Shown here piece after piece: positions 7,791 to 15,600 of a DNA stretch of 64,000 bases (positions are counted from its first letter, which is position 1; each line of letters opens with the position of its first letter). Under the pieces are notes generated by a model that was not told where the DNA came from, did no database searches, and saw only the letters and a program-made list of their open reading frames with translations. Source of the DNA: Fimbriosthenelais zetlandica. Lineage: Eukaryota. The stretch is from NCBI GenBank assembly GCA_977030845.1, contig OZ365115.1, positions 10,230,001 through 10,294,000 on the forward strand, read 5' to 3'. The position numbers and the translations under genes are program-made.

Positions 7791-10700
7791 TAACTTAATT
7801 ACCGGTATGATCAACCCCAAACTCTAGGCTATGGTGCCACTGTGTGCTTGCTTCTAACTAAACACCAAAGTTACCATCGCATATACATGTATATATTTCT
7901 TCCTTATCACTTATATACACATATAACAGGTTGTTGACCTGTCATGGCTTGCTAAGAAGCATTTAAGACAAAGTTAGCAACACAGATTTTTATCTTGATA
8001 CTAACTGAGGATAATTTTTAATACATGTAGGATATACACTGGTGGCTGTTTTGTACCCAGTTTCAGTCGAAAGTTTCACCAATAACAATGATTAAGTTTG
8101 TGTATATAATATAACATTAAAAAGTAAACCTACATCACTTTCTTTCAAAGAGCAAGTTAAATATGATAATAGCTGGTGGTTAACTAACATAACACACTCG
8201 GTGCCTATCTACAACCCTCCTATACATGTTTATGGATTTTCTACCATGTCTTATAGCCATTAAATGTCAGGTGATATACATGTAATACTCCCACATTGAA
8301 AAGGCAGCTATAATAGACACTTCATGGGATACCACTATACGACCCATGAGAAATATATTTATCCTATGTCTCCATGCACCACAATTTAACCATTAACATT
8401 AAATGTTACTAACTAGCAACATTTAGTCGTCTGATTATTGTATCTGAATTTGTATCAGCTTTATTTCAATCTAGAACAAATATTAATTTGTAGATAAGCA
8501 TTTATGACAATTTCTTTTTTGTTTGAGAAACATGTTTAGGACTTACATAGTTCAAGTTGGTCTATCGGTATAGACAATAGTCAGACAACCATTGTAGATG
8601 ACTTTTATCTTTATTCCATATTGATGTTAGCCAACTAAGCTGTTTTATTTTATTTTGTTATCTTTCAAACTGTTCATTGAATGCCACTTTATATTAATGT
8701 TGCCCATTATTTCGAATGTAATTAATAGCGAATGTCACACCCCTCCAAAATAATATAATGAAACATCTTCCGTTCAGGTTAAATCCCAGACTAATGTTAG
8801 TCATGAAGATACCATATTCCAATTATACTATACCCCAGAAAATACAGCTTAATAGCTTCACACTATATCACCTCTAGTATTGGCAAATTCTAGCATGAAA
8901 GATACATTCGGAAAATTTATTCTCTTTGAAGACCTCAAGATCATAACTTATAGATAGTGGCACAATGTGCCAAGGCTGATTATAATCTGAAGTCAGGATT
9001 GTCCATGAAGTCTTCAGGTACTAAAGTCAAAAATGTCAAACAGATATTCAATAGAGTCCAAAATTATGTAAACAGAGAGAACCGGAAGTAGACTTTAGCG
9101 TTTTAAGCCACTCTAATTGAACATCATTAACGATGTTTTTATTCCATGTGTCCCTAAAAATCAGGAATGTTAAGGTATATATATGTCATCATGTCAAAGA
9201 GTGACATTAAATACATACATCAGTATGCCATGTAATAAAATGTTTTGAATTATAAGTGGAGTAGAGATAATGGTAAAGCCTGCATGATAAGTGAATTAGT
9301 AAGACTGCATGGGCATTTCAACGGCAGGTGGTAATTCAGTACATTACAATAGTCAATGGTTCTTGCATTTCATATAGCCAAAATCCGAGAACACCCAAGT
9401 TACTCAACCAATGCCTATTGCCTTGAACAGGAGTGAATGAACTATTTACACTAACAACTGGAAACAATTGTAAATGCAGTGGTCCAAACAGGCACTCACT
9501 AATTACCAGGTACAAAAGGGAAAATATATAGGAAAGGGATGTTTTGCTAAGCATACCACAATTTTGAATATATGTTTTCTTTCCATGGAACTAATAACCA
9601 AACTATCATCATGCAACTAAAGGCCTATCAATTGTACATCTTCACTTATATGGTTAAACAGTTCCACAATATAGATGAACAGGCTTGTGTAATCTTAACA
9701 AGTGCTTAAATTATCTATTTACACAACAATGTATACATGTATGTATGCTACAACTAAAGTATAGAGCTGTCAAAACATGTCCAAAAGTTAAAACCATGAA
9801 GTATCTTTATGAGAGAATCACCATAATACTATACCACTTTGGACATCAATATGCATGGCTATGTTATTCAGGTATCCCCAAACTTTTCATTTGTATTATC
9901 CACGACTACATGTAGATACAATAGGGTATTCTTCACATTTCTTTCCACTTATGGGTGGTGACATTCTCTTTATACAAAACACCAAATAGTAAACAGCATC
10001 GACTACTAGAAAAGAATGATAAACTATGTACAAGAAACTTCAAAGGTTGTCAGCAAGTTTTCCAATATTTCACATTTAACCAAGTTTGTTCCAATATTGG
10101 GTGTGGACCCAAGGCTTATCATGGGAGACTGTCACCACCACCGTATATGGTCATGACAGCATCTACCTCCCACAATTGTTGACATCAGGCTCCATGGATT
10201 GTCACACAAATTAAGTTAGCAAGGAAAGATGGTCCTCTTGATTCCCTTAAACCAAATTTTGTAATTCATATGATCATATACCAGTGGCAAGGATATGCTC
10301 AAGGCGTCTGTATATCTAGCATTTGGCCAATGTCTTTAGTTTAATATAAGAAAATGTCTCTTTAAGAATTCTAAATGCGTCTAAGTTGTTTACATTGATA
10401 AGTACTAGCTTCCTCAGACTATGACAGGGGAATCAAAATAATATTTGACCTGACTCAGTTTCAAAAGTTGGTACAAAGACATAGGGATTGTTATAATATA
10501 TAGCAGTCAAAGCATTTGCTTGCATGGACAGCTATTTCTGAGGTATAAAAAGAACTAGGACACTGGATATTCCAGCAAAGATTAATTAATAACATATCAA
10601 GAATCACAGGATAAAAGGTTATTATTGTTGGATAAGTACTTAATGTAGATAAAAAGAAATCTGACAGATGCAAAGTCGAGAATATGACTAAAAATGTAAG

Positions 10701-12319
10701 GAGGAATGGTATACATGTACAATCTAGCCTTTATGTAAGCTTATACTTATTCACGTTTTCTCATTAACAGATGAATGCATGGGCCAACTCTTTTTCTCTG
10801 GAGTATCAAAATTTCAATACAAGCACAATATCAATTTTGGTTATCAATTGGACATACCAACAAGTTGGATAGCAATTAACATAGGAAATTCAACAGTCTG
10901 AACAACCACTATTTACAGGTCATCAGTAGTCAAAATTTGAGCATTTAAAGATCTCACATAATACCAGTCCTCATTAAATATTATTACATAATTGTTCTCC
11001 ACGCAGTGTAATATTCATGATCATTGATAAAAATGCACACATAAGTATGTTTCAATGTTATAATCACAGATTATGAAACACTTGAATAACAACAACGATG
11101 TTTCATCACAATTAACATGTACCAGTCATATCATCAGATTCAAGACTGTCCAACATACATGTGCAAAATCAGCAACATCATTGGACCTCTTGACTGTTGA
11201 TAACCATTCTCTACGCCAATCACATTATAAAATACACAGCGATGTTCCTTATCCCAGTACCTTTATTCAATTACAGGACTGACTTCAGGCATATGGATTT
11301 CAAAGTGTTTGTTACCGTACTCCAAGAACATTAGAATCCATTACGATTACGAATCCCATACTTCCCACTGCATCATACTGTGAGCTTCATGGTTCTCAAC
11401 ATTACTTTTTACATAAGTAGAAAAAAGGTAGGTACCTTATAATTATCTCACAAAAGCTTCTTTTGAATACATTTATAAGTGGGGCAATGAGCGAAGGAGT
11501 TGAACTCTAGGAATAGGGAGAACTAGAGCAAAAGTACTGCTCACCCATAAAAGTGCCCTAAGTTATTACCGTATAGAAGGAGAAGCACTAAACCACTGGA
11601 TGGGTTTGTCAATAATATGGGTGGCTTTGAGAGCCTAGTAATAGTTGAAAATCAATTGTTAAAGGGGCTTTCAAGGTGGATGCTGTTGGGCATCCCATTT
11701 TCAAAAAACGTTTACTCAGCACAGGTTAGCTGCAGCGGCCTAACAGCAGGTGACAATCTGTCATTGCAGAAAAAGGGTCCAAGAAACAGGAAGTCACAAG
11801 TGGCCTCGGCAAATGACCGGAAATACAGCAGCCTATAAGAACAATTGATATGTCTTACAGAAAGTCTTGGTTGTCTCTTAATCAGTCATGTGTATACTTG
11901 TCTCAGATGACTAGAGTGACAGATCACAGGAGGCGAGTTAATATAAACCATCCTGTCCTTACAGTGCTTCAATTTAATTAGACAAAACCAGTTGATATAA
12001 CTAAGAAAGGTGCCAATATATGTATAATCATATATATGCAATATAAACCCATAATGTATTGATCTGCACACTGATATCAAAAATTGAGCACTTTGTTCCT
12101 GGTCAGTTCACCAGTTTCACTTCAGGGGTAACCTGGATGGCTACCATCTTATTATGTGGTGATCAAATCCATGATTCACCAAAGTATACAAGAAGAGCAG
12201 ACACTTTGAAGGTCTTGCTCAACATGATGCTGATCATGACTGTCATTAGGATCCCCAGTTGAAGGGATAGAGGAAGAAAATAAACAGCTGCTTGTATTTC
12301 AGTCATTTGCCAACAGAGG

Positions 12320-12538
12320 TCACTGCAGCGAGCACCCCGGCGTGGCAGCAGGAGTCACTCCGGAACCACCGGGTGACGTGTGGTGGCTAGATCTAGATGC
12401 TGATTGGTTGGTGCTGTTGTTGCCATGTAAACTGGTGGCGGTGGTGGCCGCAGATGAGGCGGTTGTGGTGGCAGAGCCAGTAGCTGGGCCAGAGGATGTA
12501 GACGGGGTGTTGGAAGAGCTGTTGTTGCCATCTCCTAG
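12320..12538 (-). CDS. Putative stop-codon readthrough extension of Kv-beta (72 codons plus second TGA), ending in CaaX-like CSLQ
   Basis: First stop TGA followed by CTAG. In frame: LGDGNNSSSNTPSTSSGPATGSATTTASSAATTATSLHGNNSTNQSASRSSHHTSPGGSGVTPAATPGCSLQ*. GC-rich relative to the AT-rich UTR that follows. Confidence 0.7.
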   Translation of the reverse strand, partial: LGDGNNSSSNTPSTSSGPATGSATTTASSAATTATSLHGNNSTNQSASRSSHHTSPGGSGVTPAATPGCSLQ

Positions 12539-12631
12539 TCACCTCGTGTTGTGCTCCCGAGTGCGGACTGGTTTATTGTTCAGGATCTTGTCTATCTCAT
12601 TCATCACTACATGAGTCAGCTTGGGTACAAA
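12539..12631 (-). CDS. KCNAB2: KCNAB last exon, to first stop
   Basis: ttcttccag|TTT GTA ... ACG AGG TGA; [30 protein letters not shown]. Confidence 0.95.
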   Translation of the reverse strand, partial: FVPKLTHVVMNEIDKILNNKPVRTREHNTR

Positions 12632-15600
12632 CTGGAAGAATGAGTGTTTTTATTAGATTAAACAAAGCATATATCACTCCAATTCCTTTCGGGATATTGG
12701 ACAAGTTAGTAGATTTCGAAAAAGCGTTTGACACTCTTAAACGTGACATAATTATGAGCAACTTCTGAGCAAAACGTTCAATACTGGCTTTGCCAAAACG
12801 GGACTTGCCTAAATTGGTCCTTAAATATCTATCAGGTCATGCTAAAACAATTGTTACACCAAATCAGAACCAATGCATGGACATTATAAGATATTATAGG
12901 CTATTGGCGTCCCACTGGGTACAATACTGACCCATTACTGTTCTTAATTTCCATGAATGATTTGAGATGAGTATAACCTACTGTTCATATAACTTTGAGG
13001 ACCAACCTACCTGTAGAGCCTGCATATTTTCATACAGTTGTTCTACAGATGCAGCACCAAGCAGAACACAGTGGACATTCTCATTTTTCAGGCACCAAGC
13101 TGTAAAGAGAAACAAAAGAATGTTTCACAGCAATCAAAACTTGTTGCAAACTAATCTAGTAGCCTATATAGGCCTAGCCAGTATAGGCCTAATGAAATGT
13201 GGTCTTGCTCAATAATCTTTAGGAACGCTAGGCCTAAGTCTATGCTTAATATTCTTTTTGAAACAGGTTTCTGAAGCTTATATGACATGCTAAATCTTGT
13301 TAAATACAGATATGTAACATTAATGGTAAGAATACCGATTGCGAGTTGGGAAAGGGAACAGCCAATTCTGTCAGCAATAACAGCAAGTTCCCGTAATTTA
13401 GCTTGTTGTCTCCGACCCTCTTCACTCAGGATGCGATCTTTGAGCCAACCATATCCCTGAAAATGTTGAAAACGACAATGAAAAAGACATCTTGCAGGAA
13501 AGATGATATTGAATTTATCATTGAAGATGTAGAAATCGGAAGACATATTATTCATAGGTCGGCCTAAGCAGATACAAAATCCATATCCGATTATTCGATA
13601 TATTGAAAAAGGTGATTGCATAGTCCAAATTGGAGAATCTTTATGGGCATGTGAATGGAAGAAACGTGATTAACTTGAAAATGTATAGATCTAAGCTATT
13701 AACTACAATTTTAATTAAGTTTTCCACGTATTAATTCTGCCCAGGTACTCTCCTAATAAGCACAAGACACAGAATAGAAGTTAGACACAATGAATAAAAG
13801 GCTTAACATGACAGTGTACAGCTTACGTGTGCAAAGACGATATTATTGTCAAAATAAGACTGTCAGGCAATTTCAGTGACCAATAGAGACTGTCTCCGTC
13901 ATGTATGAATTCACAGTGAGTCCTACATCATCTTCCAAAAAGCAGAGACTCTCCAAATATTTAAGATATTTGAAAAAAATAATTATGACATATGCATATA
14001 ATTTTACAGATGTTATATATATACTTTTAGATTTGAATTGCTGACAGACTTATCGTGATTAGATCCAATGCTAATAGTCGACAAAAAAAAGAGAAAAATG
14101 AGGCAAATCTAGGTCCCAGCATTCCTCATGCAATCTCCTAGATAAGAACCTGCTGAAGGGCAAATTCCCCCAAAAGATCAAACTACATGTTTTAGAATTT
14201 AAATTTCTAAACAATTGTCAGGAATTACCGAAAAATAATAAGGGAATTTGCCCTTATTTGCCCGTGGTTGATGATTTTTAGTATCAGATCTCCAGAACTG
14301 TAACGATCTCTTATACAATGGTCCGATACAATTCCTTATAACCAATGGAGACCCCTGACTCTTAACAGACTCTTCCACCAATGTTATTTTATGTTATATA
14401 CATTTATGCAGGGCATAATGACATCAAAGCTTATCTCAACAAATTATCACACAAGCACCAGATCTTCACTGATCACACATGCATACTGGTCAAAGAAATG
14501 AAAGCAAAGAAACATTGTTCTGAAGCCCATGAAAAAATATATATAAATAATAAACCCATGAAAATAATTTAAGCAATAATGATGTTAAAATGAAAAAAGT
14601 ACATCCTAGATGTATATAAATTATTTGCGATGTATAGCTTTTTCCCCTTCATTGCACCGTTCTGATAAGTGTAAATCAAGTGTTCAAGCAATCTGTTTGA
14701 AATGTTAAGTATGAATCACGGAGAAGACCTTGATCACCATCTTGACCTTAGCTTTCTACTGACCTGACTCGCCTGTTGAAGCAGCCATCAGAAGATGATT
14801 AGAATTATAATTGACCACATTTATAAAAACTGAAATATCTAGCCCAGAGCTCTCCTCAAGAACTAATCCCAAATTTGATTGAAAACAATGTCTAAACCAC
14901 TAAATGGGACCATGTTTTTGTGTGTACAAAATCTAAGACATAGGCCGACATATTATGGGCCTTCCCCAAGAATATTTTTTCCTATTTTATTGTGATAGTG
15001 AGGAATGCGTTTTGGAATGAGTAAAACATTTATTCCATGCGTATGTTGAAAAAATAGTAATAGCAATTACACTTTTTATGCTAGTAATTTAGAATTTCAA
15101 GTGCCAATTCGAAATGGGAGCCCCAGCTAGGTAATCTATGTAGGCAGTTGTAAGATATCAAGTATAGTGTTTGCCTAATGCAAAAAAAAGATTGCCTTCT
15201 TTTTATTGTGAATTTTTCGTGTGTAGATTTTTGTTGAACTCACCTTCAGTGCTGCCCGAGAGAGTGTTGGGATACCATCATCATACTTGCCGGTGAGAAT
15301 TCCACATGCTAACGGGGACCAGGTCATAGCACCAATGCCTACACAAAACAACACGGACAAATAACCTAAAGTTACCATGGAAACTAAAAATCTAAATAGA
15401 CATTACCCCAGCACTGGCCATAGTAGAAGAGATGAGGTAAAACACCCAAAGCAATTTTGAAACCTGCTTTTAGGTTATTTTACTATTAAGTTGAAAGAAA
15501 AGATTGTTAATTTGTTCAGTAAGGGGGATTGCCATGGTAACTCGTGCAACACACCAGGAACAGTCTAGTAACCATAAACAACATCATGGGTTTTGATGTC

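Follow-up and report, generated by a model that had tools for sequence, protein, structure and literature searches.

Kv-beta (KCNAB/Hyperkinetic, AKR6) is regarded as a soluble enzyme of the cytoplasm, brought to the membrane solely through its docking to the T1 domain of the channel. Readthrough of the stop codon in this gene family has already been catalogued in Diptera, where Hk-RD of Drosophila melanogaster (FBgn0263220; 49 codons, TGA-C, second stop TGA) and AGAP010067-RA of Anopheles gambiae (45 codons, TGA-C, second stop TGA) stand as orthologous 'Ancient' candidates, each a line of a genome-wide PhyloCSF list (Jungreis 2016, PMC5100048 supplement). A CaaX or prenylation end for Kv-beta/Hyperkinetic finds no mention in the main text of Jungreis 2016, in papers dealing with readthrough proteins and gene models of Drosophila, in full-text searches, or in the 2025 Nature paper on Hyperkinetic and lipid-peroxidation memory. 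Likewise, no paper reporting Hk readthrough outside insects was found in the literature searched.

Several better characterized systems share individual elements with the locus described here. The readthrough isoforms of LDHB and MDH1 unmask the peroxisomal targeting signal PTS1 (Schueren et al. 2014, PMC4359377; MDH1, PMC4132726). High readthrough in the UGA-CUAG context has been established by experiment for OPRL1, OPRK1, AQP4, MAPK10 and MDH1 (Loughran 2014, PMC4132726), and CARYYA, the other classic readthrough stimulator, is effective after UGA as well (PMC4132726). Prenylation signals have also been predicted in readthrough products: a PrePS scan of extensions returned one farnesyltransferase signal, in Drosophila Syx17 (Dunn et al. 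2013, PMC3840789, Table 2), and such a signal has been predicted for the readthrough form of Arabidopsis MT1C (bioRxiv 10.1101/2021.11.09.467898).

The sequence analysed here, referred to as the window, is the whole 64,000-nucleotide stretch of Fimbriosthenelais zetlandica DNA; a Kv-beta gene has its 3' end there, on the minus strand. This gene belongs to the same family as Hk-RD and AGAP010067-RA and has, like them, a UGA-C first stop and a UGA second stop, and the insect-like tails recovered in the same survey (L036-L042) are 42 codons long; unlike the dipteran cases, the window possesses a different terminal-exon type, has CUAG in place of a CARYYA-like sequence, and comes from a non-insect invertebrate. 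As in LDHB and MDH1, a leaky-type UGA-CUAG is found on a soluble NAD(P)-dependent oxidoreductase, the putative targeting signal lies at the extreme C-terminus, and oligomerisation would amplify a small readthrough fraction. In those two enzymes, however, a very short extension bears PTS1 and experiments have demonstrated the localisation, whereas the proposed Kv-beta signal is a CaaX box at the end of a 38-78-residue tether. With vertebrate OPRL1, OPRK1, AQP4 and MAPK10 the locus shares an identical seven-nucleotide signal, conservation at the C-terminus of the extension and independence from downstream RNA structure, although the genes and phyla are different and none of those extensions ends in CaaX (PMC4132726). 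Syx17 and MT1C embody the same idea, namely that readthrough appends a prenylation signal, but each was predicted in one species, with no conservation of the motif between phyla, whereas the Kv-beta case is built on the motif's own conservation in at least seven lineages. The application of this idea to Kv-beta and the deep conservation of the motif appear to be new.

The Kv-beta gene and its C-terminal extension

The identity of the gene as Kv-beta is secure, given a match to solved structures, hallmark exon motifs and library matches. The exon at 17073-17195 matches Kv beta-2 chains in the PDB (E = 4e-20) and has 207 matches at E <= 1e-10 in a representative library, among them full-length vertebrate Kv-beta; the long Kv-beta representatives matched in this library were all vertebrate. 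The family motifs FDTAEVY, YWGTSRW, QAEYH and WSPLACG occur in the remaining exons, and the exon series fits Kv-beta throughout. The features at the 3' end of the gene, in window coordinates, are the following.

13011-13100, minus strand: penultimate Kv-beta coding exon, used as the anchor for fetching orthologous loci
12542-12631, minus strand: terminal Kv-beta coding exon of 30 codons (FVPKL...EHNTR), with a polypyrimidine-AG acceptor upstream
12539-12541, minus strand: first in-frame stop, UGA, proposed to be leaky; the same in a close relative
12535-12538, minus strand: CUAG directly following the UGA; this context is known to stimulate readthrough (comparative data and PMC4132726)
12323-12538, minus strand: readthrough tail of 72 sense codons in the Kv-beta frame, starting CTA GGA
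12323-12334, minus strand: CaaX box Cys-Ser-Leu-Gln (TGC TCG CTG CAG), proposed as a farnesylation signal and conserved across lineages
12320-12322, minus strand: second stop, UGA, which fixes the Cys four residues from the C-terminus; the same in a close relative
12299-12319, minus strand: conserved block CCT CTG TTG GCA AAT GAC TGA, which contains RAATGAC and may lie outside the coding feature

The tail is of low complexity, being rich in Ser, Thr, Ala, Gly and Asn, and judged from this composition it looks disordered; its sole Cys is the one in CSLQ. The residues preceding that Cys are rich in G, P, T, A and S, the composition of a flexible linker, and TPAATPG is found at this place in both the window and L088. 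The GC content is ~0.60 in the tail versus ~0.39 downstream. Since 15% of mononucleotide-shuffled tails also remain free of stops, and reading across the region is largely uninterrupted in the two remaining frames and on the opposite strand, the open frame alone is weak evidence for translation, and comparison with other species is needed. For a random 4-mer with the composition of the tail, the chance of fitting C[SATV][LI]Q is 3.5e-5.

A degenerate in-frame duplication of 105 nt (35 codons) is present inside the tail, with copies at 12390-12426 and 12495-12531 (GNNSSSNTPSTS... and GNNSTNQSASRS...). This duplication makes the window tail, at 72 codons, longer than those of L088, L089 and L009 (38-53 codons). 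A simple-repeat artefact was considered and rejected: the tail contains no tandem repeat, only the single degenerate duplication.

Coding constraint in a close relative

Genomic contigs of a related species from four sequencing runs were aligned to positions 10500-15500. At a threshold of at least 85% identity, the contigs of the close relative aligned to the exons, to a few blocks of the 3' UTR and to one continuous piece, 12271-12634, while the introns did not align. This piece spans the terminal exon, the entire tail and ~50 nt past the second stop; differences were listed only at least 31 nt from the ends of a piece, which leaves 12302-12603 covered, the entire tail included.

Every difference listed for the penultimate exon lies at a third codon position. 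The tail differs from that of the relative by 18 substitutions. In the readthrough frame, 16 of these fall on third codon positions (P = 1.7e-6 for such an excess in one given phase), and all 16 are synonymous. The two remaining substitutions are conservative (R>K and A>T), and the sole indel, a 6-nt deletion, is in frame. By the Nei-Gojobori method, dS in the tail is 0.345 and dN is 0.014, giving a dN/dS of 0.04. The first TGA, the CTAG, the codons of CSLQ and the second TGA are all identical in the relative. A comparable pattern is seen between the tails of L036 and L039, whose three differences are all at third positions.

The silent third-position changes, the in-frame indel and the low dN/dS together indicate that the tail evolves as a coding exon in the Kv-beta frame across a conserved stop, with the coding signature extending up to the conserved second stop as is characteristic of programmed readthrough. 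On these comparative data, the tail is very probably translated. The original prediction had stated that the tail ends in C-S-L-Q before a second stop, with the only Cys of the 72-residue extension, and had taken this tail to be a readthrough product; the codons TGC TCG CTG CAG confirm the former, and the dN/dS of ~0.04 and the conserved UGA-CUAG support in-frame translation of the tail, a prerequisite of the latter.

Extensions in diverged lineages

Orthologous loci were collected through the ORF containing the penultimate exon, which led to eight short gene calls; scanning their alignment against metagenome contigs gave 80 loci, and two further loci were obtained via short gene calls matching an upstream exon. 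The terminal exon, the stop, its context and the in-frame tail were located at each locus by script. Terminal-exon orthologues were located in L002, L009, L010, L088 and L089. Tails with the same type of end occur in seven lineages, that is, the window and six diverged ones, the independence of the metagenome-derived lineages being judged by sequence divergence alone. The label 'insect-like' refers to resemblance to the catalogued dipteran cases.

Window: UGA-CUAG, 72-codon tail ending ...TPGCSLQ
L009: UGA-CUAG, 53-codon tail ending ...PGACSLQ
L010: UGA-CUAG, 78-codon tail ending ...TPGCALQ
L088: UGA-CUAG, 38-codon tail ending ...TPGCTLQ
L089: UGA-CUAU, 42-codon tail ending ...STCVIQ
L036/L037/L039 (insect-like): UGA-CAAUCA, 42-codon tail ending ...PFCTIQ
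L042 (insect-like): UGA-CAGUCA, 42-codon tail ending ...NFCSLQ

All of these tails terminate in C-[S/A/T/V]-[L/I]-Q-stop, at lengths of 38-78 codons and with middles that cannot be aligned. Two gene calls add further ends of this kind, CTLQ in P0161 (a relative of L010) and CSLQ in P0159 (a relative of L042), and the Cys lies exactly at -4 in the window, the close relative, L009, L010, L036/37/39, L042, L088, L089, P0159 and P0161. When the five tails of the CUAG/CUAU type (window, L009, L010, L088 and L089) are aligned, only three positions are invariant: Cys at -4, Gln at -1 and the opening codon, itself an element of the leaky-stop context. The second stop is mostly UGA, and its offset from the Cys is constant in all tail-bearing lineages. 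The codons used for the motif differ among lineages (TGC or TGT for Cys; TCG, TCT or AGC for Ser; CTG or CTC for Leu; CAG or CAA for Gln), which argues for selection on the amino acids and not on a nucleotide element. In all likelihood, to judge from this conservation, the CaaX end is the selected feature.

Other parts of the tails are conserved more locally. HHRPPPA is common to the tails of L088 and L089, and its HH is kept in the window (12368-12385) and in L010. The insect-like tails (L036/L042) begin with QS-x-CPPGG, which provides a second conserved Cys. A profile of the insect-like tails matched their own contigs and one relative only, and a profile of the B-type tail brought one extra relative.

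The tail is absent from the clitellate-like group, in which UGA-A is followed by short unconserved extensions, and from the rotifer-like group, which has UAA stops. In the clitellate-like L034 (3202-3235), a 10-codon in-frame extension ends in CDLQ, a motif predicted to be prenylated but 'shunted'; it may be a remnant or a product of chance. In L002 the first stop is likewise UGA-CUAG, but the in-frame tail runs to ...CVFWQN, and the contig ends 230 nt after the stop. A splice model for this locus, in which a 66-nt intron leads to a CVPL end, was not accepted in support, since CVPL belongs to the yeast prenylation-negative set and the contig ends so soon after the stop.

Two alternative terminal exons are arranged in tandem in L010 (4300-4400; 6170-6264), L088 (13690-13778; 15320-15410) and L007. 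The upstream exon ends ...STLVRKR or ...APRRR at UGA-AAU and is without a tail, while the downstream exon carries UGA-CUAG and the CaaX tail. A scan of the whole window detected only the downstream, tail-bearing type. The insect-like terminal exon, which ends ...STLALR, resembles the upstream tail-less type, such as ...STLVRKR of L010. Given two types of terminal exon and this resemblance, the insect-type and CUAG-type tails may be either homologous or convergent.

Competence of the motif for farnesylation

In every tail, a1 is S, A, T or V, a2 is either Leu or Ile, and X is always Gln, a pattern of the CaaX class recognized by farnesyltransferase (FTase). The signature of this enzyme comprises a Cys at -4, a variable a1, an aliphatic a2, Gln at X and a linker of small residues upstream, and farnesylated CaaX proteins with a terminal Gln include the PRL phosphatases (CCIQ/CCVQ) and CENP-F (CKVQ). 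The Kv-beta tails resemble these proteins, as well as the motifs from the yeast Ras61 screen (PMC9231725), in the Cys at -4, the aliphatic a2, the terminal Gln and the flexible hydrophilic linker. Unlike in PRL and CENP-F, where the motif ends the normal frame and is borne by every molecule, the motif in Kv-beta is reached only via readthrough.

Competence of the individual motifs was taken from functional screens based on yeast Ras61 and Ydj1 (PMC9231725), which report on the yeast FTase, from which the animal enzyme may differ. CSLQ, CTLQ and CVIQ belong to both the prenylation-positive and the cleavage-positive sets, CTIQ belongs to the prenylation-positive set, and CALQ is predicted to be prenylated (0.986) and cleaved (0.959) (PMC9231725). 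Four of the five variants have thus been recovered in published yeast screens, and the fifth is predicted to be positive. The model from that study predicts about one third of all Cxxx sequences to be prenylatable (PMC9231725), so that motif competence alone is not very specific. A search of the window tail for a second membrane signal revealed neither a polybasic stretch nor a second Cys, and a farnesyl group alone would therefore bind membranes weakly.

These results bear directly on the original prediction, which had read the terminal Gln as the mark of an FTase-type signal, had called for a prenylation prediction, and had named loss of the Cys at -4 from orthologous extensions as the outcome that would count against it. 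The occurrence of CSLQ in both positive sets agrees with the first point, and the outcome across all five variants, with four in the yeast positive sets and CALQ scored at 0.986, agrees with the second; the Cys is retained at -4 in six further diverged lineages. Taken together, conservation and screen data suggest that the Cys is likely to be farnesylated.

A different function for the same residues has to be weighed. The tail could be translated by readthrough while C-x-[L/I]-Q serves as a C-terminal docking motif, or its Cys as a redox- or metal-reactive residue, without any lipidation. The case for C-x-[L/I]-Q is indeed one of sequence conservation and not of chemistry, and the additional conserved elements (HHRPPPA in L088 and L089; QS-x-CPPGG in the insect-like tails) imply that the tail may do more than anchor. 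Nevertheless, the Cys stays at -4 in tails that vary from 38 to 78 codons, and the combination of L or I at a2, Q at X and a free a1 is the signature of an FTase substrate, with most of its variants functional in yeast. A terminal Gln also does not fit PDZ-type ligands, and a role independent of lipidation is accordingly considered unlikely.

Stop-codon context and the route past the UGA

The first stop is UGA in 7/7 tail-bearing lineages. UGA-CUAG is present in five loci (window, L002, L009, L010 and L088), L089 has the variant UGA-CUAU, and the contexts of the insect-like loci, UGA-CAAUCA and UGA-CAGUCA, both fit CARYYA. A conserved stop of the leaky type is therefore combined with a stimulatory 3' context, the arrangement seen in programmed readthrough. 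RNA structure in the 120 nt 3' of the first stop is not unusual (z = +0.82).

The UGA might also be bypassed by insertion of selenocysteine, by A-to-I editing that converts UGA to UGG, or by alternative splicing that skips the stop, and it is compatible with such readings that all first stops are UGA, the selenocysteine codon, as are most second stops. Several observations make these routes unlikely. A cmscan of 9500-12700 (3.2 kb that span the tail and proximal 3' UTR, both strands, E <= 10) detected no SECIS element, its sole match being a sub-threshold snoRNA-like one; assignment of the gene to the selenoproteins, for which a SECIS was sought in the 3' UTR, was rejected on this result. Silent-site variation begins four codons past the UGA (12527) and continues from there, which leaves no room for a skipped intron and shows no constraint of the kind an editing duplex would impose, and no significant RNA structure follows the stop. 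The only AG acceptor, that within CTAG, would enter the wrong frame. Finally, CUAG and CARYYA are contexts peculiar to readthrough. With no SECIS, no structure, an acceptor out of frame and early silent variation, near-cognate readthrough is the best mechanism, and the comparative evidence makes it very probable that the tail is reached in this way.

That the open frame and CSLQ are an accident of a GC-rich, trinucleotide-repeat-like 3' UTR that is never translated, a reading to which the open shuffles, the open frames on both strands, the low complexity and the internal duplication lend themselves, is effectively refuted by the close-relative and cross-lineage comparisons, in which a dN/dS of 0.04, 16/16 silent third-position changes and an in-frame indel coincide with a stop-tail-CaaX-stop arrangement in six other diverged lineages, each motif having a chance of 3.5e-5 per tail.

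Proposed mechanism and significance

Near-cognate readthrough followed by farnesylation would operate as follows. A minority of ribosomes would insert an amino acid at the weak UGA-CUAG and translate 72 more codons, thereby adding a flexible, low-complexity tether whose sole strictly conserved feature is an end of the Cys-Ser-Leu-Gln-stop type. The Cys would be farnesylated, probably with subsequent cleavage of aaX and carboxymethylation, and a fraction of an otherwise soluble, NADPH-binding channel subunit would become lipid-tethered. Because Kv-beta forms a tetramer under the T1 domain of the channel, a readthrough rate of a few percent would leave several times that share of complexes tagged; a rate of 5% gives 1 - 0.95^4 = 18.5% of tetramers. 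A small share of the normally soluble Kv-beta is thus probably tethered to membranes. A readthrough-made, farnesyl-anchored minor form of Kv-beta is the best explanation of the comparative evidence, with a probability of about 0.68. Readthrough in vivo and farnesylation of the Cys by the animal enzyme are inferred. The anchor may affect channel localisation, gating or redox sensing, and it may, as the original prediction proposed, hold Kv-beta at the membrane independently of T1 and bring the enzyme nearer to lipid-peroxidation carbonyls.

If this explanation is correct, a conserved lipid-anchored isoform would represent a new way to position or orient the Kv-beta redox sensor. It would also supply a well-conserved case in which readthrough unmasks a lipidation signal, which so far has been a predictor hit only (Syx17 and MT1C), and would extend the readthrough catalogued in Diptera to distant invertebrates. 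A model of sleep homeostasis that invokes lipid-derived carbonyls at neuronal membranes now gives a central place to Hyperkinetic, the fly orthologue, so the idea is directly testable in Drosophila.

A broader scenario may be sketched tentatively, although it is rather doubtful as a whole. Kv-beta readthrough would be common to insects and lophotrochozoan-type invertebrates and would rank among the oldest known in animals, with the farnesyl anchor as its sole invariant product. The minor membrane pool of the NADPH-bound subunit would sample lipid-derived carbonyls of the bilayer, with direct relevance to the sleep-need 'lipid peroxidation memory' of Shaker-Hyperkinetic (PMC12043502). A weak second stop and the conserved block beyond it might in addition allow regulated readthrough that masks the CaaX box, so that three C-terminal states could arise from one mRNA.

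Sequence beyond the second stop

The base following the second stop is C in 7/7 lineages, the context being UGA-C, or UAA-C in L089. RAATGAC is found 10-32 nt past the second stop in four lineages (window, L088, L009 and L036). L088 has the same GCAAATGACTGA after 15527, within CCT GAG GAG GCA AAT GAC TGA, and P0161 encodes PLLAND followed by TGA, as does the window block. This block could be a cis element, or it could encode a short second readthrough that masks the CaaX box; if the second stop is also leaky, the CaaX box would be masked in the products concerned.

P0161, an ENA gene call on a 2778-nt contig, has been translated with TGA as Trp, giving MQR-W-LDAG...CTLQ-W-PLLAND-W-..., which crosses the first, second and third TGA. 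This reading is an annotation artefact and no evidence for translation. In the presumed 3' UTR, two blocks without an Rfam match, 11716-11868 and 10869-10935, are ~90% or more identical to the close relative while their flanks are not, and the two are conserved non-coding elements.
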